Positions 7,580 to 39,732 of a stretch of 41,060 nt of DNA are shown piece by piece (the first letter of the stretch is position 1; each line of letters opens with the position of its first letter). Source of the DNA: Macrostomum lignano (taxonomy: Eukaryota); the NCBI GenBank assembly GCA_002269645.1, contig NIVC01003021.1, positions 1 to 41,060 on the forward strand. The letters are read 5' to 3'. A model generated the notes under the pieces. That model made no database searches, had not been told where the DNA came from, and saw only the letters and a list, made by a program, of their open reading frames with translations. Made by a program: the position numbers and the translations under genes.

Positions 7580-9742
7580 ATGCACGCATTCAGCTACCTG
7601 CTGCTCGGCTGGGCGTTAGTCGGGGGTGTCGCACACGGATGCACTCTGGAGGCTGAAAATATCTACGTTTATGACTACACACCAGCTGGGACAGTCGTGA
7701 TGCCAGTCATTGTGAAATCTCCAGACACTCTGGACCACGCTGCCACAAGTATTGATACCCAGAACGCCGGGATGCCTCTCGAAGTTCTGTCAAACAATTC
7801 CCTGTTGCTGAAGTCACCAATGACGGGTGTTAAGGTGCTTCGTATTACATGCGGCGATGGAGAAAAGAAGCTTCTCATAGTGAACATGATCGACACCGAC
7901 AACAATGCTCCCGTGTGGGACAGCTGGAACTACACCTACTCAGTAAGGGAGACTGAACCGGTCCCATACGAGCTGAAAGTGAAGCCGAAAGCCACGGATG
8001 AACCTGACAAGAACAGCGGACAAAGGCTCGAATATAGCATTCTTCCATCGGAATATTCCAGTTATTTTAGCTTGCTCAACCCGAGTCAATCCGTGATGAA
8101 CATCTCGCTCATCAAACAGCTAGACTACGAAACAGTGCAGCAGGTCGTTCTCATCCTGAAAGTCTCTGATTACAACACAACTGGCCAGAAAGTGTTCGAG
8201 GTAAACACAACCCTCACTGTGAACATCATCAACGAAGACGACACGAACCCCGTGTGGCTGAACTGTACAGCCGGGGCCCCGAGCGGGGTCTGCTATGTAC
8301 GCGAACTGCTGTCGAACAGCACGTCAGGAACTCTGATATCGCCACCCATCAAGGCAGTAGATGGGGACATTGGTCTGAATGCCGCAATTTTTTACACAAT
8401 CGTGTCTCAAAGTCCTTCAAGCATTGTGAACATTGACAATGCGACTGGAGCTCTGTCCATGATCACAAACCTGCCAGATCCAAACAGGTACAGCATTGTT
8501 TTGTTTGCCACTCAGGCGAACAATGGCGATAGAAAGACCAACACAGAGCTGCAGCTCAACATTGTGGCTGCCTCGTACACGCCGCCTGTGTTCGATTCGA
8601 CCCTCTACAACGTAACCATCATGGAGAACAACCCTCTAGGACTGGTGGTGGTCGTGAAGACAATCGATAATCTGAGGAGAAGCGTGACCTATCACCTGTC
8701 AGGGTTTCTGGACGTGTTCAGCATCGACGCGTCAACGGGGGAGCTGAGAACAATCAAATCGTTGGATTATGAGTCGAAGTCTTCGTACACGCTCAACGTG
8801 TCTGCATCTGACGGAACTGGATGGGGATTTACGACAGTGCTGGTACTGGTTGGAAACGAGAACGAGTTCAATCCCACATTCGACAGTGCCGAGTACACGT
8901 TCGCCGCCGCGAAGCGCGAGATCGGCCTCGAGGTTGGCAGAGTCAGCGCCGTCGATGGCGACGGATCAACGGTGACCTTCTCTATCATGGACACCGACTA
9001 CAGGAAGCTGTTCGCAGTGGATGCAAAACTTGGCATCATCACAATCAACACTATTCCAGCAAATCTTGCTGAAAAAAGCTACCGCTTCAGCGTTACAGCT
9101 TCGGACGGCTCCAGGACCAGCTCCGTCACCGTCATTGTCAACTTCGATTCCGCCCTGATCAACGTTGCGAACGCCTCCGTCAGCACGATTCCCCTCATCG
9201 TTCTGGGCTGCGTCTTCGCCGTGATTATAATCTCAGTTATCGTGGCATTCCTGCTCTACAGACGCTACTCAGCGAAGCAGGCGGACTCCGAGACCGGCCC
9301 CCCGGATGGCAGCGAGCTGCCGGACAGCTACGATTATCACGACATGAACGAGTTTGGCGGCACCTCACTGCAGGACAATCCGCTGGACGGCTACAACAAC
9401 TACATGTTCGGTGACCAGGCCGGCTCGGATGTCGGCTCGTTCAACCGGGAGCGCGACCAAGGCGAGCTGTTTGTCAGCAACGGTGTTTACCAGCTGGGCT
9501 CGGCTAATGACTACTATTCCTCGATGACTAACGGAAGCATTCACACCGTGTCTGGCGAGGGCTCTCTGGTTGGCAGCCAGCGAACGCTGGTGCACAGCTC
9601 GCGGCCGAGGCAGCTGCACGCAGGCAGCAATCTCAATGTTGTTCAGGTGGAGAACGCGGTGGACGCAGCCTCGGATCTGCCGAATTCACAGGGCGACCAG
9701 CTGGGACGCAACGGTGGACCGGGCTTGACTGTCTACTTCTAG
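7580..9742 (+). CDS. Intronless non-classical cadherin: signal peptide, ~5 EC repeats, TM, ~140-aa tail ending TVYF; 720 aa from ATG 7580
   Basis: Signal peptide MHAFSYLLLGWALVGGVAHG. Ca-binding motifs DTDNNAP, LDYE (x2), NEDDTNP, AVDGD (x2), NENEFNP. TM IPLIVLGCVFAVIIISVIVAFLLY followed by RR. Confidence 0.93.
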   Translation: MHAFSYLLLGWALVGGVAHGCTLEAENIYVYDYTPAGTVVMPVIVKSPDTLDHAATSIDTQNAGMPLEVLSNNSLLLKSPMTGVKVLRITCGDGEKKLLIVNMIDTDNNAPVWDSWNYTYSVRETEPVPYELKVKPKATDEPDKNSGQRLEYSILPSEYSSYFSLLNPSQSVMNISLIKQLDYETVQQVVLILKVSDYNTTGQKVFEVNTTLTVNIINEDDTNPVWLNCTAGAPSGVCYVRELLSNSTSGTLISPPIKAVDGDIGLNAAIFYTIVSQSPSSIVNIDNATGALSMITNLPDPNRYSIVLFATQANNGDRKTNTELQLNIVAASYTPPVFDSTLYNVTIMENNPLGLVVVVKTIDNLRRSVTYHLSGFLDVFSIDASTGELRTIKSLDYESKSSYTLNVSASDGTGWGFTTVLVLVGNENEFNPTFDSAEYTFAAAKREIGLEVGRVSAVDGDGSTVTFSIMDTDYRKLFAVDAKLGIITINTIPANLAEKSYRFSVTASDGSRTSSVTVIVNFDSALINVANASVSTIPLIVLGCVFAVIIISVIVAFLLYRRYSAKQADSETGPPDGSELPDSYDYHDMNEFGGTSLQDNPLDGYNNYMFGDQAGSDVGSFNRERDQGELFVSNGVYQLGSANDYYSSMTNGSIHTVSGEGSLVGSQRTLVHSSRPRQLHAGSNLNVVQVENAVDAASDLPNSQGDQLGRNGGPGLTVYF

Positions 9743-10613
9743 CGATCGGAGTTCGAGCCCCTTTGCATGAACTTGACATTGAATTTTTGAGCCTCATTTA
9801 CACGTAGCTAAAAGTTGGTTTCTGCTGCAACTTGACTTTCAAAACCGTATGTGCGCACAGTGGCACAAACCCAGAATCATTATGTAATCGACACGTATTG
9901 CCTGCTGATCCCTAACTTCCTTTCATTCCTAAGGTTTCCATCAGTATCAAAATTAATCCCTTGTTGCCTGTTTGAGTCCGCCATTCCCAGTTTTCGCGCA
10001 TTTAACTGCCATCCAGTACAATTGATGTTAAATAGAGCTCCATCAAGATATTTTTATGCAAACTTTGTTGACAGAAGCTCAGTAAGTTCCTGGGGTTTTT
10101 TCGACATCAGATGTATTGATAGCGATGTATAATATACGCCTCGAGGTTTCTCGAGTGTATTTTAACATCTTCTGCTCGCTCTTTGCATTCTTCTTTCTCG
10201 GGCTCGCCTCGGATCCAGCTGGGCTCAGAACAATGCCTGCTTATGGAGCGATTAGCCTAATGATAGAGTAAGAGTGAGAGCATAGAAACCATTTATGCCG
10301 ACAACTGCACTGATGAAGGAAGAGTTTAGACCTCAGACTCCGCAGCATGGGCGGGCCGCCCTCTCCATGCGAGAGTTCTCAGGCCCTGCTGCTGGCCCTC
10401 AAAACACTTCAGATTTGAATCGGCAGATTTGCATGGGTCAGCTGGATGAAATTGTTGCGGCGCTCCGATGCTGCTGCACCCGGCCGGTCATGGGAAAGTG
10501 AAGGCGTGTCCTGTGCAGCTCTCGGTTGAGAAGGAGGCTGTTTGCAAAATAAGCATTGCAGTCTCAGGCCGCGGGTTCTGCGGCCAGCATAAACCCAAAT
10601 ATGGAAATTAATG

Positions 10614-11182
10614 GACTGACTGACTGACTGACTGACTGACTGACTGACTGACTGACTGACTGACTGACTGACTGACTGACTGACTGACTGACTGACTGAC
10701 TGACTGACTGACTGACTGACTGACTGACTGACTGACTGACTGACTGGCTGACTGACTGACTGACTGACTGACTGACCGACCGACCGACTGACTGACTGAC
10801 TGACTGACTGACTGACCGACTGACTGACTGACTGACTGACTGACCGACTGACTGACTGACTGACTGACTGACTGACCGACCGACCGACTGACTGACTGAC
10901 TGACTGACTGACTGACCGACTGACTGACTGACTGACTGACTGACTGACTGACTGACTGACCGACTGACTGACTGACTGACTGACTGACTGACCGACCGAC
11001 CGACTGACTGACTGACTGACTGACTGACCGACCGACTGACTGACTGACTGACTGACTGACTGACTGACTGACTGACTGACTGACTGACTGACTGACTGAC
11101 TGACTGACTGACTGACCGGGGCGACTGACTGACTGACTGACTGACTGACTGACCGACTGACTGACTGACTGACTGACTGACC

Positions 11183-11213
<31 letters not shown>

Positions 11214-11703
11214 CGACCGACCGACTGACTGACTGACTGACTGACTGACTGACCGACTGACTGACTGACTGACTGACTGACTGACTGACTGACTGACCGA
11301 CTGACTGACTGACTGACTGACTGACTGACCGACCGACCGACTGACTGACTGACTGACTGACTGACCGACCGACTGACTGACTGACTGACTGACTGACTGA
11401 CTGACTGACTGACTGACTGACTGACTGACTGACTGACTGACTGACTGACTGACTGACTGACTGACTGACTGACTGACTGACCGACTGACTGACTGGCTGA
11501 CTGACTGACTGACTGACTGACTGGCTGACTGACTGACTGACTGACTGACTGACCGACTGACTGACTGGCTGACTGACTGACTGACTGACTGACCGACTGA
11601 CTGACTGACTGACTGACTGACTGACTGACTGACTGATTGACTGGCTGACTGACTGACTGACTGACGGACTGACTGACTGACTGACTGGCTGACTGGCTGA
11701 CTG
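10614..11703. repeat. (GACT)n tetranucleotide array, ~270 units with GACC/GGCT variants
   Basis: Read directly; source of the SQSV pseudo-ORFs. Confidence 0.98.
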
Positions 11704-12202
11704 TAGAGATTCTGAAGCACTTCATTTTAATTTTAAGCACGTGACAAATCTCTTTTCCTTGCAGATTACGATCGTAAGAAGACATTAAAATATGAAAGAC
11801 AGCTCGAATCTTCAAAAAAGATTACGTTTACGGTTTTGCTTACACTGAACAAGTTATAGCGTTTTGGCTCTATGTAGACCGCAGCATCATTGCTTTCTTT
11901 AAGAGTGATTCTCATGGCCAGATGAGGAGTGATTCTCATAGGTGGTTAATCCGGTCAACATTTAAATATTACAAAAAATTTTTACTTTCCTTTACAAAAG
12001 CGCTGGCGGAGTCATGAGAGACCCGTGAAATTTCAATCATTTTAATTGTACGCATATTCAAAGAAAAAACCCTTCAATCTCTACTGGTAGTAGAAACATT
12101 GATTATTAACCTGACAACATCGAATTTTGAGCTCAACTAATGGCAAAACACCTAAATAGATGTTCAATTTTTTTATTTCGTCATTATTTCTGTTTCTTAA
12201 CT

Positions 12203-12782: not shown

Positions 12783-13133
12783 GACCAAGGGACCCGTGAA
12801 AATCTAGCAATTTCATGAATCGCCTGCCTCCACGGAGCCCCAATCCAAGCGCCATAAAAGTCCAAACTTCATAGAAGTGGCGGCCTTTCGCTTCCTGCAG
12901 TTTTACGTGTTTCACATTTTATCAACAAGTTTGATGGGTGCCTGGGCCAGTTCAAGCCGAGAATATTTTCTAAAACCTGCGGTTGCGTATCGATTGTCAT
13001 AACTTGTATTCTGTCCAAACGAGGTATTTTACATTCGTGGTCTGATTTGTAGAGAAAAGTAAAATTTGCCCGATCTTCACGCTCACGGAATCTAACCAGG
13101 GGGTTAACCGCTGAGCTGCTCTGCTGCTTGATA

Positions 13134-13957
13134 ACTGGTACCTACATGTTACCTACATGGGTACCGACATGGTACCTACATGGTACCTACATGGTACCTA
13201 CATGGGTACCGACATGGTACCTACATGGGTACCTACATGGTACCTACATGGTACCTACATGGGTACCTACATGGTACCTACATGGGTACCTACATGGGTA
13301 CCTACATGGGTACCGACATGGTACCTACATGGTACCTACATGGTGCCTACATGGTACCTACATGGTACCTACATGGGTACCTACATGGGTACCTACATGG
13401 TGCCTACATGGGTACCTACATGGTGCCTACATGGTACCTACATGGGTACCTACATGGGTACCTACATGGTACCTACATGGACCGTACCGACATGGTACCT
13501 ACATGGGTACCTACATGGTACCTACATGGGTACCTACATGGGTACCTACATGGGTACCTACATGGGTACCTACATGGTACCTACATGGGTACCTACATGG
13601 GTACCTACATGGGTACCTACATGGTACCTACATGGGTACCTACATGGGTACCTACATGGGTACCGACATGGTACCTACATGGTACGTACATGGTGCCTAC
13701 ATGGTACCAACATGGTACCTACATGGTACCTACATGGTACCTACATGGACCGTACCGACATGGTACCTACATGGTATCTACATGGTGCCTACATGGTACC
13801 TACATGGGTACCTACATGGGTACCTACATGGGTACCTACATGGTGCCTACATGGGTACCTACATGGTGCCTACATGGGTACCTACATGGGTACCTACATG
13901 GTACCTACATGGGTGCCTACATGGTACCTACATGGTGCCTACATGGTACCTACATGT
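13134..13957. repeat. Mixed 11/12-bp array ATG(G)GTACCTAC
   Basis: Read directly; stop-free on the plus strand, giving the MVPTW/MGTY pseudo-ORFs. Confidence 0.96.
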
Positions 13958-15264
13958 AAAGTTTACTACAGAAGTTTAGTCAAGACCAGCTTTAAAGAGT
14001 ATGATTTCACCAAGCAGAATGTAATAGAAATTTATGGAAGAACAACTGTCGTGAGGGAACTGAAAAGCGACATAAAAATGAGGATTAAATCCCCTCCAGA
14101 TCCCTGGTTCCTGGGGGAATAGGCAGTTCAAATTTCCCAGCTTTCAGCTTGTTTCGACGGAAGAAGAAAAATTTCCTCAGCCGGGAATAATCTTGGCCCA
14201 GCTGCCATCCTCCATCTCGACCGGATGTTGGCGCGGTGGGGGGGTAAGGCCCAAGTAAAAAGTTGTTATTCTTCTATAATTAAAAATCTAGCACTCAGTG
14301 TCTGGCTTGCTTTACAAACTTTTACTGCATTACCCCCCCCCCCCCAGTCAACATATTGAACTCAGCCAGGTCCGCACGCACATGGATGAAGCGGTGTAAA
14401 GCTGGGAAAGTGTTCCGTGTTTCCTCTTTTTCCGCTTTTCTAAGCAGCCCCGCGTGTTTCTTCTGAACCATTTCAGCTGCCGGCTGCTTCCTGGGGTAGT
14501 GCAGCGGCGATCAATTCTCGCCCGTTTCCTCACCCCCTCCCCCAGTCTCTCTCCGTTCCTCATCGTCCTATACGGTCTTTTAAGCTCCTGAGCCCAGCCT
14601 GCATGGCAGCTCGAACGAGACGCTTCTTCTTCAACAAGGTGAGTCCGCAGTCATGAGCGGTATAGGATGCAACCGGAAAAGCTGTCGAATTGAAAAAAAA
14701 GCAGAAATCAGGATGAGAGAGGCTGGGATGAGATTAAAAGCAGAAAATGAGCAGCAGATAAGGGCGGATGTGTTCCAAGTTTAATGAGACCCGGGGGACG
14801 AGGGCCAACAGATATGGGCCCGCCGGGTCCGTTCCTATGGGAGATTTCGAGGACCGAAGACCCGCTAAGGGATCTGGCTCATGTTTTTCTCCTAACTGGG
14901 AAAAATGAACTGGCCAAGGGCTTCAATTGATGGCTGGCAGCTGCGTCTATTAATATATGCCATTGATGCAGAGCCTGCAGGCTGCTGGATCGGGGATAAT
15001 CCGTGCTAAATCCCCCCAGTGCTTCCTTATTAATGTTCTTCAGTCCGTGTTCAACAGTTAATAACAGGGTGCCTCGATTCGATTTTTTGATAGGCAGTTT
15101 TCGTGACAGAAATGCATCGCTTCGGCATTTAGGGGCTTCTCTGTATTGCTCTGGAGAACGCGCAGCATAAAATGGGGTATTGCCATAGACAAATCTGTCG
15201 GGAAATATCCGTGATAGAAAAATCTGATTTCTCCAGAGCATACTAAATGCACTAGCGATATGAA

Positions 15265-15965
15265 GGAAATGATTCCTGAAGATGATTATTGGGAGAGTGA
15301 TAATGGAGAAATGATTCGGAAAGATGATTATCGAGAGAGTGAGGATGGGGAAAGGATTCGGGAAGATGATTATCGGGAGAGTGAGGATGGAGAAATGATT
15401 CGGGAAGATGATTATCGAGAGAATGAGGATGGGGAAATGATTCGAGAAGATGATTATCGAGAGAGTGAGGATGGAGAAATGAATTCCTGAAGATGATTAT
15501 CAAGAGAGAGGATGGGAAATGATTCGGGAAGATGATTATCGAGAGAGTGAGGATGGGGAAATGATTCGGGAAGATGATTATCGAGAGAGTGAGGATGGAG
15601 AATGATTCCTTAAGATGATTATAGGGAGAGCGAGGATGGGAAAATGATTCTTTAATATGATTATAGAAAGAGAGTGAGGATGAGAAAATGATTCCTTAAG
15701 ATGATTATAGAGAGAGTGAGGATGGAGGAAATGATTCCTCAAGATGATTATAGAGAGAGTGAGGATGGGGAAATTATTCCTCAAGATGATTATAGAGAAA
15801 GAATGAGGATGGGGAAATGATTCCTTAAGATGATTATCGAGAGAGTGGGGATATGGAAATGATTCGGGAAGATGATTATCGAGAGAGTGAGGGTGTGGAA
15901 ATGATTCCTCAAGATGATTATCGAGAGAATGAGGAGGGGGAAATGATTCCTGAAGATGATTATCG
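15265..15965. repeat. ~42-bp purine-rich minisatellite (GATGATTATCGAGAGAGTGAGGATGGGGAAATGATTCGGGAA)
   Basis: Tandem copies, some with 1-nt indels that break the frame. Confidence 0.93.
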
Positions 15966-16424
15966 GTGAACAGTTGCAGCAAGTATCAATAAAAGTGTCA
16001 ATTTTGTTCAGTGGGCTCTGTATTGTGCCTCCCCCGTGAAACACCCAGCCGCAGAATTAGGACCAGCAGATCAGATTGAAGCGAGGGAGTATAGCTCGTA
16101 AATGATATGATGGTGCTAGGAGGCTGAGCGGCCCCACTAATTGCGAGGGTCACAAAAGCAGACAGAAAGCACAAAGATAACTGTATTTTAAACGATAAAT
16201 AAGATTTTCGTTGTTTTTCTGCGACAAATTTATGCAGAAATTATGCTTATGAAAGCAGTGATGAAATTATTCTGCACAATTGCTACTAGCAGAGGGAAGA
16301 GAGGAGCTGAGTGAGACTGTGGGCAGCTCCGTGAGTCGAAAGAATGTTAGATGAAAAATGTTTATTCCTATCCGAGAAAGGTTTTGCGAATGAATTCATT
16401 TCCCAGTGACTTTCAATCGCGATT

Positions 16425-17420
16425 TGCCCTGAGATGGGCGATTCTTTGAGATGGCAGGGCGATTCTTTGAGATGGCGGGGCGTTCTTCGAGATGGCGGGG
16501 CGATTCTTTGAGATGGCGGGGCGATTCTTTGAGATGGCGGGGCGATTCTTCGAGATGGCGGGGCGATTCTTCGAGATGGCGGGGGCGATTCTTTGAGTTG
16601 GCGGAGCGATTCTTTGAGATGGCGGGGCGATTCTTTGAGATGGCGGGGCGATTCTTCGAGATGGCGGGGCGATTCTTTGAGATGGCGGGGCGATTCTTCG
16701 AGATGGCGGGGCGATTCTTCGAGATGGCGGGGGCGATTCTTTGAGTTGGCGGAGCGATTCTTTGAGATGGCGGGGCGATTCTTTGAGATGGCGGGGCGAT
16801 TCTTCGAGATGGCGGGGCGATTCTTTGAGATGGCGGGGCGATTCTTCGAGATGGCGGGGCGATTCTTTGAGATGGCGGGGCGATTCTTTGAGATGGCGGG
16901 GGCGATTCTTTGAGATGGCGGGGGCGATTCTTTGAGATGGCGGGGGCGATTCTTTGAGATGGCGGGGGCGATTCTTTGAGATGGCGGGGGCGATTCTTTG
17001 AGATGGCGGGGGCGATTCTTTGAGATGGCGGGGGCGATTCTTTGAGATGGCGGGGGCGATTCTTTGAGATGGCGGGGGCGATTCTTTGAGATGGCGGGGC
17101 GATTCTTTGAGTTGGCGAGGGCGATTCTTTGAGATGGCGGGGCGATTCTTTGAGTTGGCGAGGGCGATTCTTTGAGTTGGCGAGGGCGATTCTTTGAGTT
17201 GGCGAGGGCGATTCTTTGAGTTGGCGAGGGCGATTCTTTGAGATGGCGGGGGCGATTCTTTGAGATGGCGGGGGCGATTCTTTGAGATGGCGGGGGCGAT
17301 TTTTTGAGATGGCGGGGGCGATTCTTTGAGATGGCGGGGCGATTCTTTGAGATGGCGGGGCGATTCTTTGAGATGGCGGGGGCGATTCTTTCAGATGGCA
17401 GGGCGATTCTATGAGATGGC
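16425..17420. repeat. 21/22-bp minisatellite (GAGATGGCGGGG(G)CGATTCTTT), ~45 copies
   Basis: Read directly. Confidence 0.96.
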
Positions 17421-17429
17421 GGTTCACAA

Positions 17430-17697
17430 TGAGTCAAAATGAGTCGCATTGAGTCACTATGAGTCACTATGAGTCACTATGAGTCACTATGAGTCACTAG
17501 GAGTCATTATGAGTCACTATGAGTCACTATGAGTCACTATGAGTCACTATGAGTCACTATGAGTCACTATGAGTCACTATGAGTCACTATGAGTCACTAT
17601 GAGTCACTATGAGTCACTATGAGTCACTATGAGTCACTATGAGTCACTATGAGTCACTATGAGTCACTATGAGTCACTATGAGTCACTATGAGTCAG
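17430..17697. repeat. 10-bp array (GAGTCACTAT)n, 27 units, 25 containing TGAGTCA
   Basis: Units counted directly in register with the 10-nt blocks. Confidence 0.97.
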
Positions 17698-19272: not shown

Positions 19273-21029
19273 ATGCTGCAAGGCGAATGCGCCGCCCTCA
19301 ACGAGACCGAGTACTTCGCTAGGACGAAGGACTTCGGCGAGACTGTCTTCAACTCGCTGACCATAGCGGTGTCCTGCCTCGGCTTGGTGCTCAACATCCT
19401 GTCCCTGGTGGTCTTCGTCCGGGTGTTTAACAAGTCTGGCAGCAGGAACAGCTTCCACCTGTTCCTGGTGTTCCTGTCCGTGTGCGAGGTGTCCTTCTGC
19501 CTGACCAGCGCCGTAACGTACACCATCATGACCGTCTCCGTGAAGGGCCTGTACCACTGGGCCGGGCTCAATGCCCAGCTTGACGCCAACGAGTCCCTGC
19601 TGTTCGCCTACTCGCTGTACATGCCGACGGAGAGCTCCGGCCTGACCACCCTGGTGTACAACCTGTTGACTCTGTTCGCCTACCTGTCCGTGGTGTCGCA
19701 GTTCAGCCGCAACTGCTGGGTGGCCATCACCGCCCTGCTGCGCTGCTACGTGGCAACTCGTCGGACGAATGTGCAGGTAAAAGCAGCAATAAATATTGGC
19801 AGGAGGCAATTGCGGGCAATTACGCTGACGGCAACTCTGCCCATACAAGCGCAGGCACGCACTCACACACAAGCTCACACAGGCACAAACCCCAAATGAG
19901 CATACCTCATAACACAAACCCCAAATGAGCATACCTCATAACACAAACCCCAAATGAGCATACCTCATAACACAAACCCCAAATGAACATACCTCATAAC
20001 ACAAACCCCATATGAACAAACCTCATAACACAAACCCCAAATGAATATACCTCATAACACATGCCCCAAATGAACATCAAATGAACCTCATAACATAAAC
20101 CCCATATGAACATACCTCATAACACAAACCCCAAATGAACATACCTCATAACACATACCCCAAATGAACATACCTCATAACACAAACCCCAAATGAACAT
20201 ACCTCATAACACAAACCCCAAATGAACATACCTCATAACACAAACCTCATAACAGTAGGCAAATCTCAATCAAATTGACCACGCACCGTCCCTCCCGCAG
20301 GTGAGCCAGATGTACAGCCTTCGCCGTATATCGCTGATCTTCGCGCTGAAGCTGGTCCTGGTGGTGTCGCTGAGCCTGGCCCGGTCCTACCTCATCAACA
20401 CGCGCAACTTCCTCAGCCTGGAGTTCAACGCCTGCAACACCACCGGCTGGCAGCGCCGCGGAATTCTGCTGCTGCACGTGATGCTGAGCAAGTCAAGGAA
20501 CCGCGACACCGTCAACATGTTCTGGACGCTGCTCAGCCAGACCATCCCTCTGGTGGCGATCATCACCTCGTCGGTCCTGTTGGTGGTGTCGCTGCGCTCG
20601 AACAGCATGGTGAACAGCTCGGAGCGCAACAAGAAAATCACCCACATGGTGTTCATCTTCTCCCTGACTTTCGCTCTGCTCGAAGGTCCCCGGGCCATCG
20701 TCTTCTTCGTGTTCAAAGTGTACACCAAAGTGTCCAGGAGCGTCGCCATCAGGATATTCCAGGTCACGTACATCCTGTCGGTCACCGACTCCATCGTGAA
20801 CGTGTTCATCTACTTCTTCAACGATCAGCACTTCAAGAAGGAGCTCTGCGGCGAGGCCAAGCCGAAGCTGCCGCCCTCGCACACGGAGACTGCGCGCCTC
20901 ATCGACTCCAAGCAGAGAGGCGCCGCGCCCGCCACGGCTGAGCTGCCTGACGGAGGCTGCGACTGCGTCGCCGCTTCGAAGCCGGCTGACGAGATCGACG
21001 AGCTCAGATCCCAGGAGACCAGCGTCTAG
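19273..21029 (+). CDS. Rhodopsin-class (class A) orphan GPCR, FMRFamide-receptor-like type, join(19273..19776,20301..21029), 410 aa
   Basis: Kozak-like GCCATG; N-glycosylation site NET. TM1 LGLVLNILSLVVF, TM2 LVFLSVCE, TM3 end ITALLRC, TM6 FALLEGPRAI, TM7 TDSIVNVFIYFF. Phase-0 intron: donor CAG|GTAAAA at 19776, acceptor CCTCCCGCAG| at 20300. Confidence 0.9.
19880..20250. repeat. 29-bp intronic minisatellite (ACACAAACCCCAAATGAACATACCTCATA), ~12 copies
   Basis: Fills most of the GPCR intron. Confidence 0.94.
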
Positions 21030-21096
21030 GACCTCGGGATAACTCCTGGACTGCGACTGAGGACCTTGCTTTGCTTTGACTCTGGCTTTTGAAATA

Positions 21097-21562
<466 letters not shown>

Positions 21563-22092
21563 CCAATTTTCGCTTACACCTAGAGGAGACATTAGCTTTG
21601 CCGCAAGCCTCCCGGATCAATAAATAAATTATTTCAAAAGCAAATTTCAAATAAGAATTTTAACAATGCATTGCTTCAACCTAAAACGATGGGGGGATCG
21701 CAGATAAGCTGAATTCGATAAATTTATTATAAGTGCAAACTCAAGTAAGTAAGTGTTGAACCCAAAGACAGGCTCGTGCAGATGGAAGCTCGCCAGAGAC
21801 TGGAGAAATTCACGCAGGATTGCAGGAGATGAAGAGCTCAGGTGAGAACCTCTACAGTTGCACGTAGAGGCTGAATGGAGCGCAGAGACAATGACATCGG
21901 GGCAGAGATGGAGAGGCAGTACCTGCAGGCTGGGTCCTCTGCCAGTCCTCCAGCTGCCTCCAGACCCCCTCTACAGCCAGCGGAAAGGAAGTGCAGCGGT
22001 GCAGCAACACCAAGTCGGATGCCCTGGACAAGTCTGGCTTTGGCAGGAATCTTTTCACGTGGGAGTTGATTTTCAACTGATGGATGCAACAG

Positions 22093-24508: not shown

Positions 24509-25528
24509 ATTATGAATCAATTTTCTTCCTCATCTCTGTTACACGCATTGTCACAAAGTCAGCTAAGAATTAAAAATAGATTCATAAAACCAATGAGCCG
24601 AGCCGTTTTTAATGGTTTTAGGCACAGGAAATGTACAATGGTGCGTACTCGTAGAATAAATAATTAACAAAGAACCCTAATTTTCTGAACGAAAAGCTTT
24701 ATGAATATCAATAGAGCAATAAGACAGACACAAAATACTAGAAGATGAACATTGGGTCTGTCTCCGATTGAAAGAAATAACACAATATTTTTGTGCTGAA
24801 AAAATGAAAACTTCCTATCTCCGTAGTGTATTTATTTGAAAAAAAACGGCCTCCTAAAATTTTCAAGAAACGAGCTTCCCATCCTTCCACTTGAGTAGTC
24901 CTTGATAAACGAACTGAGAAAACTTTCCGTTGAGTTAGCGCGCGACAAACGATTATTTGCGAGTACAGTGTCCAGGGAAGCTGATGCAGCTTCGAGACGA
25001 GTTTGTTAAAAGCACAAGAAAGTTTTGAGCAAATCGTTCGAGAATTTGAGTCGCCGAGAGATGAGAAAAAAGTTCTCAAAAGTTCGAAGCTCGAACATGC
25101 AAGGAGGAGAAGCTGTTTGGTGCAGGAAAAAACTTCAAGCACTTTGCGCCTCTTAAACGCCATCGGTGCGAAGCGACAGACGCAAGGGTTTGAGGCACCG
25201 GGACCTCATCGGATGGAAGATCGCGCGGCCTAGCGAAGGGATCAGGTGGGGACTGAGTTGAGACGCCGAATATTGATGCGGACTCCGTGCTCGAGTGGTT
25301 CGCCGCCGGTGGAGCTGCCCCTTGAGATGCTGGGGGGGGGGGTGGAGAGACGCAGAGGGGGGGGGAAGTGAGGGAGATCGGGAAGGGTGCCAGCTGCCCC
25401 ACCTCAGTGTGTTGGATTCCGGAATAGAGAGACAGGAGGGCTGCATCAGCTCATTAATAACTAATGACGGGATCAGCTGGCGCATGCAGTGGCTTCAACC
25501 GCCAGATCAAAACCAGTGGAATTAACTT

Positions 25529-25810
25529 GGGGGTTGCAGCCTACCGTAGTGGTCAGAGCGACTTGACGACTGAAAGGTAGGGGGTTCGATTCTCGACCCA
25601 CTCGGAACAATTTGTGTCCTTAAGCAAGACACCAGCTGTAAAATGGGTGCCAGCATTAGCTGGGGTAATTGAGGGTGTGCGTGGCGACCCCTGCAAAGTC
25701 CTTGGACTGAGCGGCCGTACGCAGCCTTCAGATGCGCCGCGCAATAGCTGCGTCTGAGCTGTCGGTTGCCCATCTGGCCCAATTGGGGCAGGTGAAATCA
25801 ATTATTATAT
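25529..25810 (+). mobile_element. tRNA-headed CORE-like SINE, copy A
   Basis: A-box-like AGTGGTCAGAGCG and B-box-like GGTTCGATTC, then AACAATTTGTGTCCTTAAGCAAGA..CCAGCTGTAAAATGGGTG, GTGGCGAC and tail TCAATTATTAT. Most of these blocks are shared with the copy at 37846. Confidence 0.75.
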
Positions 25811-30745: not shown

Positions 30746-31629
30746 ATGTAAGGCAGCGACTACACACTAAAACAAGTTAGTTCAAAGTTTCGTATACTCT
30801 TCTGAGGAAAATGATCGAAGTACTTTTTTGTGAGCTTCAGACCAGGCAGTGATGATCGCGCACCCGAGATAGCTAATAACGCATTGTTTGTCATTTTACG
30901 CTCGTACAACCGCAAGACAAGCAATGCAGGAACACAATTACGAGAACTGATGCCCTGCTTTCGCTGAGTCAAGATTCGAAGGATCGCACGTCACAGCGGC
31001 AGATGACAGGTAAGAGCGAAGCACGGGACCGGGGCGACACGCGAAGCAGGAGAATCGCCAATTCAGAGAGCAATGGAGGCTTTTCCGAAATCTACTCTTA
31101 GTGAAGAAAACGGTCAAAAATCTGAGCCAGCAAGTCACGCAACTCCCCTCTGACAGGCGGGGGAGCTCAGCCCCAAAATTTCATAGTAATTCCCATAGCT
31201 GCTTGTCTATGTCATCAATATGGATGCGCACGAACAACCGCGGTATAGCTAGGAGCATTTTGAGGCCTCTCAACATAACTGGCCTTCATCTTGTTTTCCC
31301 TTCCCACTCGGCGGTCTCTTTCTCTCTCTATTTTGCCAATTAAACGAGCCTTTTCCAGCGATGCGTGGAATTTTAACAAGGAACAAAAAATTGCATGACT
31401 ACTAACTACACTGACATGATAAATTGAACTGTGCATGATTGAGAATGGCCCAGAGTCCTACGCGACCCAGCTGCTTAGGAACTCGTCTAGCTGCTTTAAC
31501 TCACTTGTGGGTTGCATAAAATTCAGGAATGAAGAAATGAGCATAAATCTCACATGGTGTGGCCGAGAATTATGATACTCATACTTAATCCATCTCATAA
31601 GAGCATTATTTTTTCTCCGCAAATCCCAT

Positions 31630-32500
31630 TTCTTACCCCGACCAACCACCCCTTCACTTTCTTACCCAGGCCAACTCCCATTTTATTACCCCGGCCGACC
31701 CCCCTCATTTTATTACCCGGGCCGACCCCCCTCATTTTCTTACCCCGGCCGACCCCCCTCATTTTCTTACCCCGGCCGACCCCCTCATTTTCTTACCCCG
31801 GCCGACCCCCCTCATTTTCTTACCCCGGCCGACCCCCCTCATTTTCTTACCCGGGCCGACCCCCCTCATTTTCTTACCCCGGCCGACCCCCCATTTTATT
31901 ACTCCGGCCAACCCCCCATTTTATTACCCCGGCCGACCCCCTTCATTTTCTTACCCCGGCCGACCCCCCATTTTATTACCCCGGCCGACCCCCATTTTAT
32001 TACCCCGGCCGACCCCCCATTTTATTACCCCGGCCGACCCCCCATTTTCTTACCCCGGCCGACCCCCCATTTTATTACCTCGGCCGACCCCCACATTTTC
32101 TTACCCCGGCCGAACCCCCACACTTTTTTACCCCGGCCAACCCACCACATTCATACCCTGGCCAACCCCCCAAACTTTCCCAACCTGACCCAAACCCCCC
32201 ATTTTATTACCCCGGCCAACTCCCCATTTTATTACCCCGGCCGACCCCCTCATTTTCTTACCCCGGCCGACCCCCCATTTTATTACCCCGGCCAACCCCC
32301 CATTTTATTACCCCAGCCGACCCCCCCTCATTTTATTACCCCGGCCGACCCCCCACCTTTTCTTATCCCGGCCGAACCCCCACACTTTTTTACTCCGGCC
32401 AACCCCCACACTTTCTTACCCCGGCCAATCCACCACTTTCATACCCTGGCCAACCCCCCAAACTTTCCCAACCTGACTCAAACCCCCACTTTTCCCAAAA
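31630..32500. repeat. C-rich ~24-26-bp minisatellite (TTACCCCGGCCGACCCCCC..TTTT)
   Basis: Read directly; source of the 424-aa PGRP pseudo-ORF. Confidence 0.93.
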
Positions 32501-33609
32501 ATTTCCAGTAAAACCCCACAATCAGCCCAAAGAACAGGTAAACCAAGATACACTACTAAAATTTTTTTATATTTGCATTCTTCCTGTGCTAAACACGCAA
32601 CTTTCCGAAAATGAATCAAATTGGCATTCAGTTGTCATTTATTGTCAGATAAGTGTTGGAATCTTACATGCGCTCACGGGAGCCAGCACAACTGATTTAA
32701 TAATCCAGATAGAGTATGGGAATTTTTCGGTAAGCACTCTGGGAACTAGAAATAGACCAGGCCTGACAAGGTTAGGTATAATTATGATAGGAAAAAAAGA
32801 TAACACAAGTAGCTCTACTACTTATTAAATCAGTAGTAGCACAGGCCATCCGAGCTAGGAATTGCTTAAAAGAAACTTTACCTGTGTAAAATCCAAGATT
32901 ATAAATCATTAGATAGATTGGTTTAATTTAACCTGCTAAATTTTTCTGATTTTTTTAATAATTTGCTAGCTACCGATATGTATCGAAATTATATTAAACT
33001 AAGGCACAATTTTAGCAATCCCTGTACACTGACTGTAGTCTGTATATCCATGTTGAGAGGAAGATTTTTATAGAAGAAAAAGCACAATTGTATAACTAAC
33101 AGAAGTCATTACGAAAACAAAAACTAAGTAAACACATGCATGTTCGTAATGACTAAATCTGTAAGCATAATTACAGTTTAATCACAGGTTGAAAGGCCGC
33201 CAAAACAGATGAATTCTGCATATAATATGTACCGTAACCATTGCTTTACTAACTTAGTGGAAATTGCAATAAAAGACACAAAGTATTAAGTCAGGTTGTT
33301 AACTACTAGCTGAAGTGACACTATTTGGCAAATATTGAGGAGTATGCAGGTGAGTATTTCATTATATCTTTTTGGAATTATAAAGATTATATGCATAACT
33401 AGATATCAACAGAGCCACTCAGCATTGAATTAATGCACTTGATGTAACTATGCTCATGGCACTACTGCAAAACGTAATAGGCTGCGAGCATTTTGTCAGA
33501 TAAATTTATTGGATCGTGTTTTGTTGCTAATGGCTGCTTGGCAATTTTCAGAGCACCTTGTCACACAATTTGGCATAACTTTATTGTGCTTTAAAAGAAT
33601 TTGATAACT

Positions 33610-33945
33610 TTTTACTACCCCGGCCAAACCCCCCCACTTTATTACCCCGTATAACACCCCTTTCCTACCCCAGCCAACCCCCCGCATTTTCCTACCCCGG
33701 CCAATCCCCCACTTTCCTACCCCGGCCAATCCCCCGGCCAACCCCCTTTTCATACCAAGGCCAACCCCCCTTTCCTACTCTCAACTTTACTACCCCGGCC
33801 AACCCCCTTTCCTACACCGGCCAACCCCTCTCCACTTTCTACCCCAGCCAACCCCCACTTTACTGCCCCGGCCAACCCCCCTTTCCTACCCTCCACTTTA
33901 CTACCCCGGCAAACCCCCCCCCACCCGACTTCACTACCCTTGGCC
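33610..33945. repeat. Degenerate C-rich array related to the 31630 family (CTACCCCGGCCAACCCCC)
   Basis: Shared ACCCCGGCC(A/G)ACCCCC core, same orientation. Confidence 0.88.
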
Positions 33946-34445
33946 AGCAAATAGGAAATATTCAGTTAATTACCATAAACAACAAGCGAAAAATCATTTT
34001 CAAGTATTTAGTGCCCCCTAATTTTTTATTATCTTTTTGATTCGTTCAGGAATAAAATAGTCTACGGTCACACCCCATTCCAGCCTCATACAGAATGTAG
34101 CATTGGTGGTGGTGTGACTTCGGCATAATTATGTCAATTATATTTACAATGCCAATAATTTAATCAGAGGCACCGCACCACAAGAAATTATCCCATTACG
34201 CTCGTAACGCCATTGAAAGCATGGAAATTACAAACGGAATATCTGACATTTTTTCTCATTAATAAACAGAAGAATAACCTTTTAAATCAACGCCACACAC
34301 AGAATTACATAAATAGGGTACACAGACATCTAAAAACTCAATTAAAAAAGATCTTACTATCATAAATAACTAATAGCAGCAATAACTGAAATTTTTTCTA
34401 GCCCTGAATTTCGGCGGTACAGCCAAGGCATCGGACCAGATGAGA

Positions 34446-37400
34446 TCAGAAAGACGGAGATGACAAGCAGAAGAGACGGTCCCGCTCCCTGCCAAGCCAT
34501 TTAAGCACCCGGTTCACCGACTGGATGGCCGACCGCTTGCTGGCCAGCGGGCTGAAGGCTGCGTACAGCTCGAACTCTTCGGTGATCTGGCAACGAGAAT
34601 TGATGGGATGTTGAGTGCTTAGCGGAGTGCCGCCATCAGCTGCTATGGGAATCTGTCAGCGGGATGTCAGCGTGATGTCAGGGGTATCTGACAGCGGGTT
34701 GTCAGGGGTATGTCAGCGGGATGTCAGGGGAATCTGTGAGCAGGATGTCAGGAGTATGTCAGAGGATGTCAGGAGTATGTCAGAGGGATGTCAGGAGTAC
34801 CTGTAAAAGGGTTGTCAGGGGTATCTGACAGCAGGATGTCAGGGGTATCTGTCAGCGGGATGTCAGAAGTGTATTATTTGTTAGTGAGATGTCAAACAGG
34901 CTCACCCAGCCCATCACGGATGCCAGCTGGTTGGTGTGATACACCAGCTTAAGCGGCCTGGTCCGCCGATGCAGCAGGGCGTGCATCCGCTGGTAAAGCG
35001 CCATGACGCGCTGCTGGTCCTCAGGCTGGCCAAACGGGTCGCCCATCTGCGGCGAGAAGTACTGGCCAGCCAGCTTGATTTTGTACACGAAATGGCGCAC
35101 CTCCTCCGCCCCAGTCTGCGCCAGGGTCCACTGGCCGGCAACGGCGCTCTCGCGAATCTGGGCCAGACAATTGGCCTTCTGCAGCTTCTGCGTGCGAAGG
35201 AGTGAAATAAAATTTGCTACTGACAAGCCAAAACACTACTGTTAGTACTGTTAGTAGGTTGGAAACTTTAACGACTAATTTAGCAGTTTCCAATTCAAAG
35301 TTTAATCCGATTGGTCTTGCACAGATCCCATTGACAAAAAAATCCCCACAGATAGCACAGATCCCATTGACTAAAACTTCCCCACTGATTGCACAGATCC
35401 CATTGACTAAAACTTCCCCACAGATAGCACAGATCCCATTGACTAAAACTGCCCCGCTGATTGCACTGATCCCATGGACTAAAACTTCCCCACTGATTGC
35501 ACAGATCCCATTGACTAAAACTTCCCCACTGATTGCACAGATCCCATTGACTAAAACTTCCCCACTGATTGCACAGATCCCATTGACTAAAACTGCCCCG
35601 CTGATTGCACTGATCCCATGGACTAAAACTTCCCCACTGATTGCACAGATCCCATTGACTAAAACTTCCCCACTGATTGCACAGATCCCATTGACTAAAA
35701 CTGCCCCGCTGATTTCACTGATCCCATTGACTAAAACTTCCCCACAGATAGCACAGATCCCATTGACTAAAACTGCCCCGCTGATTGCACAGACCCCATG
35801 GACTAAAACTTCCCCACTGATTGTACAGACCCCATTGACTAAAACTCCCCACTGATTGCACTGATCCCATGGACTAAAACATCCCAAGTAATGCACAGAT
35901 CCCATTGACTAAGCCCAACCGAAGTGTACCTACCTCAAGTATTTTATTCTTGGCCTCGGCCAAAGCGTCAAAGCTGTTGCCGTCGACAGTGAGCAGCACC
36001 AAGCAGAGCTCCTCGTCCAGAAAGCACACGTAGGCGTACAGGTTGCCGCTGGCGTCGAACTTCGGCAGACAAATCGGAGTCCAGGCCTGACTGGTCTTGA
36101 AGGACTCGGTGCAGTTAATCAAATTGATAATCAAATGCATGTCTAACGGGTGCAGGTACTGCCGCTTCATGTGCACCAGGCTCACCAGCTTGGTGCCGCT
36201 CAGCAGGATGCCGAACACCAGATCCTGCGAGTGATGGGGGCTAGATTCTCAGTGTCTCACCCTGAGATCTCACTCTTCTAGCTTAGAGATTAAAACTGTC
36301 GACTCTGGAGACTCTCATTATCTCTTTGTGAGATTCTTAGTGTCTCACCCTGAGATTCTTCATGCCTTGCCCTGAGATTCTCCTTGTCTCACCCTGAGAT
36401 TCTCCTTGTCTCGCCCTGAGGTTCTCACTGCCTCGCCCTGAGATTTTCAATGTCTCACCCTGAGATTCTCACTCTTTTAGCTTAGAGATCCCAACTGGCT
36501 ACTCTGGAGATTCTGATTATCTCATTGTGAGATTTTCCTTGTCTCACCCTGAGATTCTCACTGCCTCGCCCTGAGATTTTCAATGTCTCACCCTGAGATT
36601 CTCACTCTCTAGCTTGGAGATTCCGACGGTCAATTTTTGAGATTCTCATAATTTCATTGTGAGATTCTCACTGTCTTAACCTGAAATTCTGACCGTCTCA
36701 CCTGCTCACTGTGCCTCACCCTGAGATTCTCACTCTCTAGCATAGAGATTCCCATCGTCTTCTTGAATAATTGTCTAATTGTGAGATTGTTACCAATATT
36801 CTAAAGTTATAACAGCAAGGGAGAGCCAATTTGTGAGCAATTAAAAAGGCTAGAATTCCCCAAAACTGAAAGTCTTAAAAACCACTTAAAATTATCTTCG
36901 CTAGAGGTATAGAACAGTTTTTCAACTACTAAATTATTAATTATTAGTACTGGTGAGCAGGATATTTTAACTATTAAACCAAATAAATAAAAACTAGGCA
37001 CAACAAAGTGGGTAAACAATAGCAGCTACTGTAAAAACAAACCACCAATGAAGCGCATTTATGATAGAATGTTAAAATTGAACCAGAAGCACACAGAAGA
37101 CACACAAAAAGAGATGAAACAAACAAACAAACAAACACCTAATACTTACCGGATTGCGACGATTCTGGAAGCGAGTTAACGAATTAAGGAATATATTTTT
37201 TATCATTTCTTAATGACAATAACAAATTTTAGTAACAGCCCATGAACTGACCTTGTCGATTCACTTGTTTTTTTGTTAATTGCTTGCAACTTCTAGATAC
37301 TTTACTTACAGTAGAAATAGCGAAATATTGCATTCACGAAATTAGCAATAATGAAATTCTATTAACTGTTTTACTCTTAGCATAAATATATAGGGTAATA

Positions 37401-39196
37401 TATGGACTATAATAAAAAATAAAGCAAATATACTTTATATGCTACTAGTAGTAAAATTTTATTTTATTTTAATTTGCAATCTTTGGCAGTGCAGTACAGA
37501 AAAATGAGAAAATACCGCAATGAAAACTGGAAGCACGCGGACCCTATTTTAAAGTTGATCATATTGAAGTGCCACTAACACTAATTAGTCATTAAAGTAC
37601 AAAGGAAAACTATCTCCACATTGAAATTTTAATCAAAATTTCAAAGTGCATGCAGTAGGTCCTTCTACTAAAGAAACTACAAGATGACGATATGTATCGA
37701 TAGGCGGCATTTTCGCGATCTCATTCCTCAAATAAAGAAAATTGATTTAAAAAAAACATAATTTTTTTAATATTTGTATTTTGATTGGCTTGGAGTTGCT
37801 TAATTCTCTATTGGATTACTCTATAATGTGTCTAATGTGTCTAGGGTTTGTAGCCCAGTGGTCAGAGCGTCGGACTCATGACGTGAAGGTCGGGGGTTCG
37901 ATTCCGGATACCACTTAAACAATTTGTGTCCTTAAGCAAGAAGACCACTTAACTCTGCATTGCTCCAGTTCACCCAGCTGCAGGTGTGGCGACAATCAAT
38001 CAGGGCAATCAGGGCAGCGGTATTCAATTCAATTATTATTCCCATCTCCTTAAAAAAATCCAGATTTTCACCTTAACCCGAGCTCCAGAACAGATGGCAT
38101 CGCCGACAGCGTCTCTGGTAGACTTGGGCAGTGGCAGGCACTGGACTGCGCCCAGCAGGGGCCCGATGTCCCGCTCCATGAACTGCAGCAGGCCGGTCAA
38201 GAACCTGTCCGCATCTGTAGCAAATGGCGCAGATCGTAATTTGACTTGCGAAATGCCCGCTTGAGCACAGTGAAGGTGAGCAGGCTGAGGATCTGATTGT
38301 ATAAATAGTTGAGCTGGAGCAGCAGTTGAGTAGGCGACTCGGCCGACCGGCAGATGCACACGAGAATGAGGAACTCCTTGGCTAGGAATACGAATCTGCG
38401 ATCAGCGGATTCGAACCAATGCACCTGATCGTCTGAGTCCTCAACTACTGACACCAGGGCGGTCATGACGCCCATGTGAGTCACCAGCTTCTCTTCGTTG
38501 CCATGCCGACTAAAGATCGGCTTGCCTGAACGGCTCATGACAAACACGTGCCGATCAGCTGTTCTCCATTCTGCTGTCAGCGTCTCCTCTACATCATCCT
38601 GCTGTTGCTTTTGCTGTTGCTGCTGCTCAGCTTCGTTAAGCAGCAGCGCCGTCACGCCGGCTGCGATGCTGTCTTCGGCAACAGCAGCGGCTGGTCTCGA
38701 GTTCGAGCCCGGCTCGGATGCTGACGGCTTGTCAGTCTCAGCCGCCGCCGTTGCCGTCCCAGCAGCTCTTCATTGGCTTCTTTGTCTTCGTCATCTTCAT
38801 CATCTTCGGATGCGGCCTCTGCTGCTGCTGCCAGGGCAGCCGGCGTTGGCGCCTCGCAGCTGGAGGCGCGGGCGATGCGCCGGATGGCGCCGCGGCTGGT
38901 CTTGCCAGCCACCTCCGTGTGGATGTCCTCCACGTCGATGGTCTTAAGCAGGGCCAGCTGCTTGTCTTCATCTTCGTCGGCTGCTGCTGCTGGTTCTGGA
39001 CGCGTCGGCGCCTCCAGCGGTGGCTGCGGCAGCGACTCGCTGCGATCGTCAAGCTCGTCCCCAGCCTGCTGCAGCTGCTCAGATGAGTCCATCAACTCCT
39101 TGGGCAAAAGCGAGACCGCCCGCCTGGTTTGCTGAGATTTCAAGGATGCTGGATCTACTTCTTCACTTTCTGGTGGGATGCAGCAAAGTGGGATGC
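34446..39196 (-). CDS. MON1: MON1 (SAND family; Rab7 GEF subunit), complement(join(34446..34586,34906..35187,35934..36224,38072..39196)); two apparent 1-nt frameshifts (~38765, ~38217); start at ATG 39092 or in an upstream exon
   Basis: Motifs HVFVMSRSGKPIFSRHG, MGVMTALVS, YNQILSLLT, NYDLRHLL, LHPLDMHLIINLI, AWTPICLPKF, RHFVYK, RPLKLVY, FELYAAFSPL and KWLGRERDRLF match recalled MON1A. All three introns are GT-AG, phase 0 (AAG|GTGAAA, GAG|GTAGGT, TGG|GTGAGC); exon lengths 291, 282 and 141 are multiples of 3. Confidence 0.95.
34630..34865. repeat. Degenerate intronic repeat built on ATGTCAG(C/G)GG with TGTCAG-N6-CTGACA mini-palindromes
   Basis: Read directly in the last MON1 intron. Confidence 0.75.
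35325..35912. repeat. 36-bp intronic minisatellite (GCACAGATCCCATTGACTAAAACTTCCCCACTGATT), ~16 copies
   Basis: Read directly; stop-free on both strands, giving the 213- and 294-aa pseudo-ORFs. Confidence 0.95.
36240..36760. repeat. Degenerate ~22-bp CTCACCCTGAGATTCTC repeat organised in larger (~130-200 bp) blocks
   Basis: Blocks starting CTCACCCTGAGAT(T)CTCACTCT..TAG recur at ~36256, 36455, 36587 and 36716. Confidence 0.8.
37150..37164 (-). other. Candidate 15-nt in-frame microexon of MON1 (NRRNP)
   Basis: Minus strand: TTAACTCGCTTCCAG | AAT CGT CGC AAT CCG | GTAAGT, inside a phase-0 intron. Confidence 0.55.
37846..38040 (+). mobile_element. tRNA-headed CORE-like SINE, copy B (antisense in a MON1 intron)
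   Basis: GTAGCCCAGTGGTCAGAGCG (A box), GGTTCGATTCC (B box), AACAATTTGTGTCCTTAAGCAAGAAGACCACTTAACTCTGCATTGCTCCAGTTCACCCAGCTG, GTGGCGAC and tail TCAATTATTAT. Confidence 0.78.
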
Positions 39197-39732
39197 CTGC
39201 AAATTAAAAAAACTATCTGATCAAGCCGAAAATATAATCAATGGAAAGGTCATTCATTTTTTATGTATTACTAGATTAAATTATGGCTTGACAAAAATGC
39301 AGTCATTATTTGTTAGCTTATAATTAAACCTTATGCTTTATGCACTGTCAAAATCGAAACATTTTTATTATTTAAATTACATTAATGGATAATAATAATA
39401 TAGTAATTGTATAAAAAATGTCTAAAATGGTAGCCAATCATAGATTTAAACTCATACTGGTATACAAAATTTTAATTCTATTTGAATTATAATATAGGTT
39501 TATATCTTTTAGGATCCCATATAGGTGTGGCTCATATTATACTGCCATATACCAAGGAAAATCTTGTGACTATAGTGATTATGCAATTCAAATAAAAGTA
39601 AAAGTTACAATTTAGCCAATCAACTTGTTACTAATGATAAACAAAAAGGTAGTTATGATGTAATCTTTGTTATAGTCAAAATTAAAAAAGTCAGTATTAT
39701 AAATAATGATTATCTATTTATTCAGAGCATTA

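Follow-up and report, generated by a model that had tools for sequence, protein, structure and literature searches.

The window analyzed here is a 41,060-nucleotide (nt) stretch of the flatworm Macrostomum lignano (GenBank assembly GCA_002269645.1, contig NIVC01003021.1, positions 1 to 41,060, forward strand). Its minus strand carries a gene for Mon1, a subunit of the Rab7 guanine nucleotide exchange factor (GEF) and a tri-longin-domain protein of the MON1/SAND type. Near the middle of one intron of this gene lies a 15-nt block, AATCGTCGCAATCCG, which encodes the five residues NRRNP. We conclude, with a probability of roughly 0.88, that this block is a genuine coding exon of M. lignano Mon1, that it is spliced into mRNA, and that it is already present in public gene models.

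The gene extends from about 39091 to 34446, as judged by tblastn with homologues, Pfam, and sequence matches in the PDB. Three longin domains (LD1 to LD3) were found in the order Fuz_longin_1, Fuz_longin_2, and Fuz_longin_3, with Pfam E-values of 2.8e-31, 6.6e-27, and 9e-26, respectively, which identifies the product as MON1/SAND. The PDB matches were to human MON1A (9l0d/9lol; E of ~1e-110) and to the Drosophila protein (8c7g; 1e-95). The host intron, 38071-36225 on the minus strand, is 1847 nt long, in phase 0, and AT-rich, with a GC content of 0.34 over 37001-38000. The upstream exon ends at 38072 in GCT CGG GTT AAG/gtgaaa (ARVK; here and below, the slash marks a splice junction), and the downstream exon starts at 36224 in ctcgcag/GAT CTG GTG TTC (DLVFGILL).

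Between these two exons, the minus strand reads TTAACTCGCTTCCAG, then AATCGTCGCAATCCG, then GTAAGT followed by a (TGTT)n tract. The codons of the block, AAT CGT CGC AAT CCG, are in frame and free of stops. Its flanks are canonical (CCAG/ on the acceptor side and /GTAAGT on the donor side), and its length of 15 nt lies within the 30 nt allowed for a microexon. The 3' splice site reads cgTTAACTCGCTTCCAG, and the donor with the sequence that follows it reads GTAAGTattaggtg(tttg)n, so that the inclusion form joins GGGTTAAG, AATCGTCGCAATCCG, and GATCTGGTG in this order. The original prediction had been made from the letters of the DNA, and its coordinates, acceptor, 15-nt exon, CCG/GTAAGT donor, period-4 tract, and phase-0 intron were all found as described.

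The evidence that carries our conclusion comes from deposited gene models. Positions 33900-39400 of the window are 100.000% identical, over 5501 nt and without gaps, to the corresponding locus on NIVC01003021.1 in GCA_002269645.1 (Mlig_3_7). Joining the minus-strand segments 38179..38072, 37164..37150, 36224..35934, 35187..34906, and 34586..34446 yields exactly the 278-amino-acid (aa) GenBank protein PAA53797.1, and the same join minus the 15 nt fails to reproduce it. Thus, the central claim of the prediction, a frame-preserving microexon adding NRRNP between ARVK and DLVFGILL, stands, since PAA53797.1 was matched solely with 37164-37150 included. Two more Mlig_3_7 proteins, PAA60026.1 and PAA55998.1, come from the sister contigs NIVC01002202.1 and NIVC01002677.1. 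All three proteins read SGARVKNRRNPDLVFGILL, and an identical 32-mer comprising acceptor, exon, and donor is present in both sister loci.

The Mlig_3_7 annotation was built from STAR-mapped RNA-seq, StringTie/TACO assembly, BLAT-mapped de novo transcripts, and TransDecoder open reading frames (ORFs). Trans-splicing and poly(A) reads defined the transcript boundaries, and ab initio prediction played no part (PMC5730564). The RNA-seq sets behind the annotation are SRP082513 and SRR2682326. Because the 15-nt block sits between two exons in RNA-only models, transcripts must contain it. The exon is found in the RNA-derived models of all three genomic copies, and these models, together with the exact match to PAA53797.1, place it in mature mRNA by indirect but specific evidence. 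It follows that the exon was called correctly but is no discovery: it is already an annotated coding sequence (CDS) exon in GenBank, and its novelty at the annotation level is nil. It had been described as hidden, a term that does not apply to an annotated exon that all three RNA-based models include.

The search method mattered for finding these proteins. A word-indexed protein search with MON1 queries gave a best match of 50-56% and missed the M. lignano cluster; negatives of that search are not to be taken as absence. An exhaustive search of representatives found P0319, which was 100% identical over the exon tested and ~99% identical overall. The 90% cluster of P0319 contains five M. lignano MON1 proteins.

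We compared the junction across MON1 homologues. An insertion between ARVK and DLVF was found in none of 120 homologues ranging from fungi to vertebrates, none of 13 shorter junction-spanning matches, and none of 68 additional sequences that represent 50%-identity clusters. It was also absent from the annotated isoforms of ten clusters (oyster, octopus, termite, starfish, lobster, catfish, turtle, lizard, tick, and moth). The homologues are contiguous across the junction, and the skipped form aligns with them without a gap, as had been proposed for MON1A. Lineus longissimus and Asterias rubens both have a phase-0 intron at the identical K/D boundary (AAG/GT...CAG/GAT), and no microexon candidate was found in either of these introns. 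Since the host intron is ancient, being common to Lineus and Asterias, and no homologue carries the insertion, the exon is a lineage-specific gain. A scan of metagenome loci returned only distant MON1 loci, none of which exceeded 64% identity across the whole query. Among the three M. lignano copies, the exon shows no variation, and neither do the 23 nt upstream or the 14 nt downstream of it, the nearest variant being at 37188. Positions 38090 and 38242 are examples of copy-specific variants, and the lengths of the intronic arrays vary between these copies.

We scored splice sites with approximate generic weight matrices, the scores of which are to be read as relative values only. The microexon donor scored 6.45, as opposed to 2.9, 5.1, and 3.0 for the three real donors of the gene, and the microexon acceptor, at 3.27, scored within the span set by the real ones (3.9, 3.2, and 1.3). 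Ranked among the donor-like sites of the intron, the microexon donor came second to a decoy at 36701 (6.9). Decoys are numerous in this intron: 11 acceptor-like and 10 donor-like sites score no lower than the weakest real sites of the gene, nine pseudo-exon pairs span 300 nt or less, and the array at 36243-36751 supplies seven decoy donors of the form AGG/GTGAGA. The microexon is the intron's sole stop-free AG...GT pair of 3-30 nt with a length divisible by three, even at score thresholds of 0. Dinucleotide shuffling of the intron gave an equally strong pair 19 times in 5000 (0.38%), and real eukaryotic DNA (31 loci with 284 kb of strand sequence) contained two such pairs, or ~1.3% per intron of this size. 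Thus, the pair is locally unusual, yet a genome would contain hundreds of such pairs by chance. Taken alone, the statistics are ambiguous, a chance pseudo-exon being roughly as plausible as a real microexon.

Signals typical of SRRM4/eMIC-type regulation were not found. TGC, the DNA form of the UGC motif, is absent from the 100 nt upstream of the microexon, in line with the remark in the original prediction that the exact UGC enhancer is missing. The pyrimidine tract at the acceptor is short, at ~9 nt rather than extended, and branch-like motifs are located at -12 and -20 rather than at a long distance. With strong splice sites and no SRRM4/eMIC-type UGC, the exon resembles the broadly included class of microexons. 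A UAGG also lies just 3' of the donor, next to the GU-rich tract.

We initially leaned toward a pseudo-exon on the basis of sequence statistics. According to this explanation, the AG-15 nt-GT pair is an unused decoy, and its presence in deposited proteins is an annotation artifact. The abundance of decoys in the intron speaks for it, as do the expectation of a pair this strong in 0.4-1.3% of introns of such size, the absence of any insertion at this junction in the other MON1 proteins examined, the missing UGC motif, and the short pyrimidine tract. The exact match to the deposited protein PAA53797.1 overturned this view. An RNA-only pipeline places a 15-nt block only if transcripts hold those 15 nt, and the block occurs in the models of three separate loci, where it reproduces the deposited protein exactly. 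We regard an unused decoy as very improbable. Several observations nevertheless weigh against a genuine and generally included exon. The RNA support derives from the way in which the published annotation was made. At 96-98% identity, the three copies may have reads or transcripts in common, and the RNA evidence cannot be assigned to the window's copy, whose exon 1 is broken and which may not be the expressed one. The invariance of the exon and its flanks is not significant (probability of ~0.13 at an intron divergence of ~3.8%), and the close relatives are M. lignano copies only, so that selective constraint on the exon is putative. The five-residue insertion has no counterpart at the junction in other MON1 proteins, which is unexpected for a constitutive segment. 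Finally, the insert is absent (SGARVKDLVF) from two other M. lignano models, UniRef A0A1I8IQP4 (n = 2) and UPI0007A34023, which we take to stem from an annotation of the earlier ML2 assembly. One of these skipped-form models carries an artifactual-looking duplication of 17 residues. Skipping may be genuine and frequent, or a pipeline that loses 15-nt blocks may have produced it as an artifact.

Both forms are thus found among public M. lignano proteins, with three entries for inclusion (PAA53797.1, PAA60026.1, and PAA55998.1) and two for skipping. This is what would be seen if the block were an alternative cassette microexon with partial, perhaps tissue- or stage-dependent, inclusion, with two Mon1 isoforms of which one has the NRRNP loop and the other lacks it. 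Such an interpretation refines that of a genuine exon rather than opposing it. The skipped form has the length of every other MON1 examined, and a normal fold is expected of it; the models that show it, however, are presumably products of the older ML2 annotation, and the 17-residue duplication in one of them makes a genome-projected model that dropped the 15-nt block plausible. An exon of 15 nt flanked by 0.9-kb introns is difficult to define and usually depends on enhancers (PMC12871342), and the GU-rich (UGUU)n tract and the UAGG just 3' of the donor could bind regulators. On the other hand, the exon is in all three RNA-derived models, and strong splice sites without UGC match the constitutively included class (PMC7821500). 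We consider partial inclusion a tentative possibility, somewhat short of even odds. The possibly regulated isoform put forward in the original prediction is not supported, in that skipped-form proteins occur only in the older annotation.

As a genuine exon, the block would be defined by its unusually strong 5' splice site, the strongest donor of the gene, in which CCG/GUAAGU could form seven contiguous base pairs with U1. Recognition would be aided by an acceptor equal to the others of the gene and by the branch-like motifs UUAAU/UUAAC 12-20 nt upstream. We infer that the microexon is nearer to the strong-site, broadly included class than to the neural-regulated class and that inclusion probably predominates. 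The exon originated by exonization within this ancient phase-0 intron, on the branch that leads to Macrostomum. In the modeled protein, it would lengthen a loop from ~5 to 9 residues, and two arginines would join an already basic loop with the flanking helix and strand undisturbed.

The position of the insert was compared in two AlphaFold2 (AF2) models. In the Lineus orthologue, which lacks the insert (predicted local distance difference test [pLDDT] of 92), helix 145-158 is followed by a five-residue loop (159-163) and strand 164-171. In the M. lignano protein P0464, which contains it, helix 358-372 is followed by loop 373-381 and strand 382-389. The M. lignano loop consists of nine residues, R-V-K-N-R-R-N-P-D, with a local pLDDT dip to ~67. 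Modeling with and without NRRNP had been suggested as a check; between these two orthologues, the loop has 9 versus 5 residues, with helix and strand kept. The insert is placed by these models in the loop between the first helix and the first strand of the roadblock-type LD2 (PMC8833172). A basic loop near the boundary of LD1 and LD2 had been predicted. This was essentially right, since the Pfam match to the second longin domain begins at the D of DLVF, but in structural terms the loop lies inside LD2.

LD2 and LD3 of Mon1 bear the basic membrane-binding patch of the Rab7 GEF (PMC8833172), and a conserved LD1/LD2 surface is the proposed docking site of Rab5 (PMC10193976). Any functional effect of the added arginines is speculation built on the modeled loop. 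Conceivably, a di-arginine loop at the edge of LD2 could act as a regulated switch, its inclusion or skipping tuning the endosomal recruitment of Mon1-Ccz1 in particular cell types; we consider this unlikely. If true, a core trafficking GEF of a regenerating flatworm would be under the control of a lineage-specific microexon that evolved independently.

Other explanations for features of the exon were discarded. The 5 CpGs within 31 nt at the exon were considered as a sign of constraint, but CpGs cluster equally at 37689-37717. An origin of the exon from a repeat or transposable element was rejected, as the 32-mer is unique in the window and a BLAST search of the intron against itself gave only an element resembling a short interspersed nuclear element (SINE), 700 nt upstream. 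No structured RNA was found in the intron, where Rfam gave no match at the gathering threshold and only chance-level ones at an E of ~1, and ARAGORN found no tRNA.

Symmetric, very short exons with lengths divisible by three are known from the micro-exon genes (MEGs) of parasitic flatworms, which encode lineage-restricted secreted proteins and contain long runs of micro-exons. MON1 of M. lignano is likewise a flatworm gene with such a tiny exon, but it has a single one and is a conserved housekeeping trafficking gene. With the animal coding microexons of the MicroExonator sets (PMC7821500), the MON1 exon shares a length of at most 30 nt that is divisible by three, AG/GT borders, a strong 5' splice site, and an insertion in a surface loop adjoining a folded domain. 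Strong sites and an in-frame length characterize the broadly included, non-neural class of microexons (PMC7821500). The exon differs from vertebrate neural microexons (PMC12871342) in having no UGC/SRRM4 motif, no extended pyrimidine tract, and no long interval separating branchpoint and 3' splice site. Unlike deeply conserved animal microexons, it is lineage specific. Intronic pseudo-exons resemble it in that it lies deep in a repeat-rich intron and is indistinguishable from a strong decoy by sequence alone, but they are set apart from it by its presence in RNA-derived models and in a deposited protein.

Isoforms of MON1 in other animals contain in-frame segments of their own: VCHD in Dermacentor (P0190/P0187), QILT in Homarus (P0031/P0147), and the nine residues CHCHSVCEC in Acanthaster (P0145). 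All of these are located in the disordered N terminus (residues ~29-94) and none at the K/D junction. They may be microexons or reflect the use of alternative splice sites. A literature search for MON1 together with an animal microexon found no paper, the sole co-occurrence being an unrelated wheat study.

Exons of 15 nt often elude both aligners and programs that predict genes, and this one is missing from the older M. lignano models. Here, what is very probably a true 15-nt exon was recognizable from the raw DNA. Its birth in one lineage, adding a five-residue basic insert to an otherwise length-invariant loop of a Rab7-GEF subunit, is a small curiosity. It would gain importance if inclusion were regulated or if the extra arginines altered membrane or Rab5 binding. 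The features of the locus and the neighboring genes are collected in Table 1.

Table 1. Features of the MON1 locus, in the direction of transcription, and of neighboring genes in the window
Feature	Position	Strand	Remarks
MON1 exon 1 (disordered N terminus, LD1, linker and first LD2 helix; ends ARVK)	38072..39091	-	ATG at 39091
Upstream half-intron, 907 nt	37165..38071	-	Contains SINE-like, tRNA-derived repeat at ~37830-37990 (+)
Microexon 3' splice region	37165..37190	-	TTAAT (A at -20), TTAAC (A at -12), pyrimidine tract CTCGCTTCC, AG
Coding microexon, 15 nt, phase 0/0	37150..37164	-	AATCGTCGCAATCCG = NRRNP; needed for exact PAA53797.1
Microexon 5' splice site	37144..37149	-	GTAAGT after CCG; score 6.45
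(TGTT)n / GU-rich microsatellite	37117..37137	-	12 nt 3' of donor; TRF period 4, 5.2 copies
Downstream half-intron, 925 nt	36225..37149	-	Contains 22/66/199-nt tandem array at 36243-36751
MON1 exon after microexon (DLVFGILL...NKILE; LD2)	35934..36224	-	Matches P0319 residues 786-882 at 100% identity
MON1 next coding exon (KLQKAN...VMGW; end of LD2, start of LD3)	34906..35187	-	tblastn, spliced translation
MON1 last coding exon (ITEEFELY...SPSF, then stop)	34446..34586	-	tblastn, spliced translation
FAM221 gene	3198-4911	+	
Cadherin-repeat gene	7541-9742	+	
G protein-coupled receptor (GPCR) gene	19273-21029	+	

In the window's copy of MON1, the reading frame of exon 1 is broken twice, and the tblastn alignment passes from frame -3 to frame -2 at 38218/38212. 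Two private indels set this copy apart from both sister copies: CT is inserted at 38762-38761, and a C is deleted next to 38218. These indels break the ORF that starts at ATG 39091; as a result, the GenBank CDS begins at 38179 (MERDIG...) and covers the C-terminal 278 aa only. The indels may be assembly errors or may mark a decaying duplicate in a neopolyploid genome. The assembly was produced with PacBio/Canu. The M. lignano assembly is redundant and the genome neopolyploid, and near-identical duplicate copies, such as the two sister loci, are expected (PMC5730564).

Assembly errors are a possible source of the exon 1 indels because another gene of the window, similar to glutamate carboxypeptidase II (GCPII)/NAALADase, also shifts frame at a 1-nt indel relative to the sister contig. 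This gene, at 225-1696 on the minus strand, changes frame at ~589-600 within contiguous coding sequence. The PDB GCPII sequence aligns straight through the break, and the sister contig has the 1-nt indel at window position 589. Over the GCPII-like gene, the window and the sister contig differ by nine 1-nt indels and one 2-nt indel.

On the plus strand, the window contains a FAM221 gene with two exons, a single-exon gene whose 733-aa product combines cadherin repeats with a transmembrane segment, and a rhodopsin-type GPCR gene with two exons. A FAM221 exon query matched Macrostomum lignano at 88%, and the corresponding Mlig_3_7 contig aligns with the first 11 kb at 98.7%. FAM221 and the cadherin-repeat gene are syntenic on the sister contig NIVC01002677.1.

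The SINE-like repeat is dispersed, with copies at 37830-37990 and 25520-25680, both on the plus strand and 80% identical to each other. It consists of a tRNA-like head with a GGTTCGATTCC box, followed by the conserved core AACAATTTGTGTCCTTAAGCAAGA; neither ARAGORN nor Rfam calls a tRNA in it. Upstream of the microexon, the intron contains one of these copies in antisense orientation. An intronic minisatellite with a 36-nt unit occupies 35317-35912 in the next MON1 intron. The window is unusually rich in minisatellites, with long tandem arrays at 10409-11815, 13128-14122, 15578-17467, 21076-21627, 31554-32828, 33496-33950, and 34615-34952. These arrays yield spurious long ORFs on both strands, for example ones encoding SQSV and PTW/YLHG repeats.

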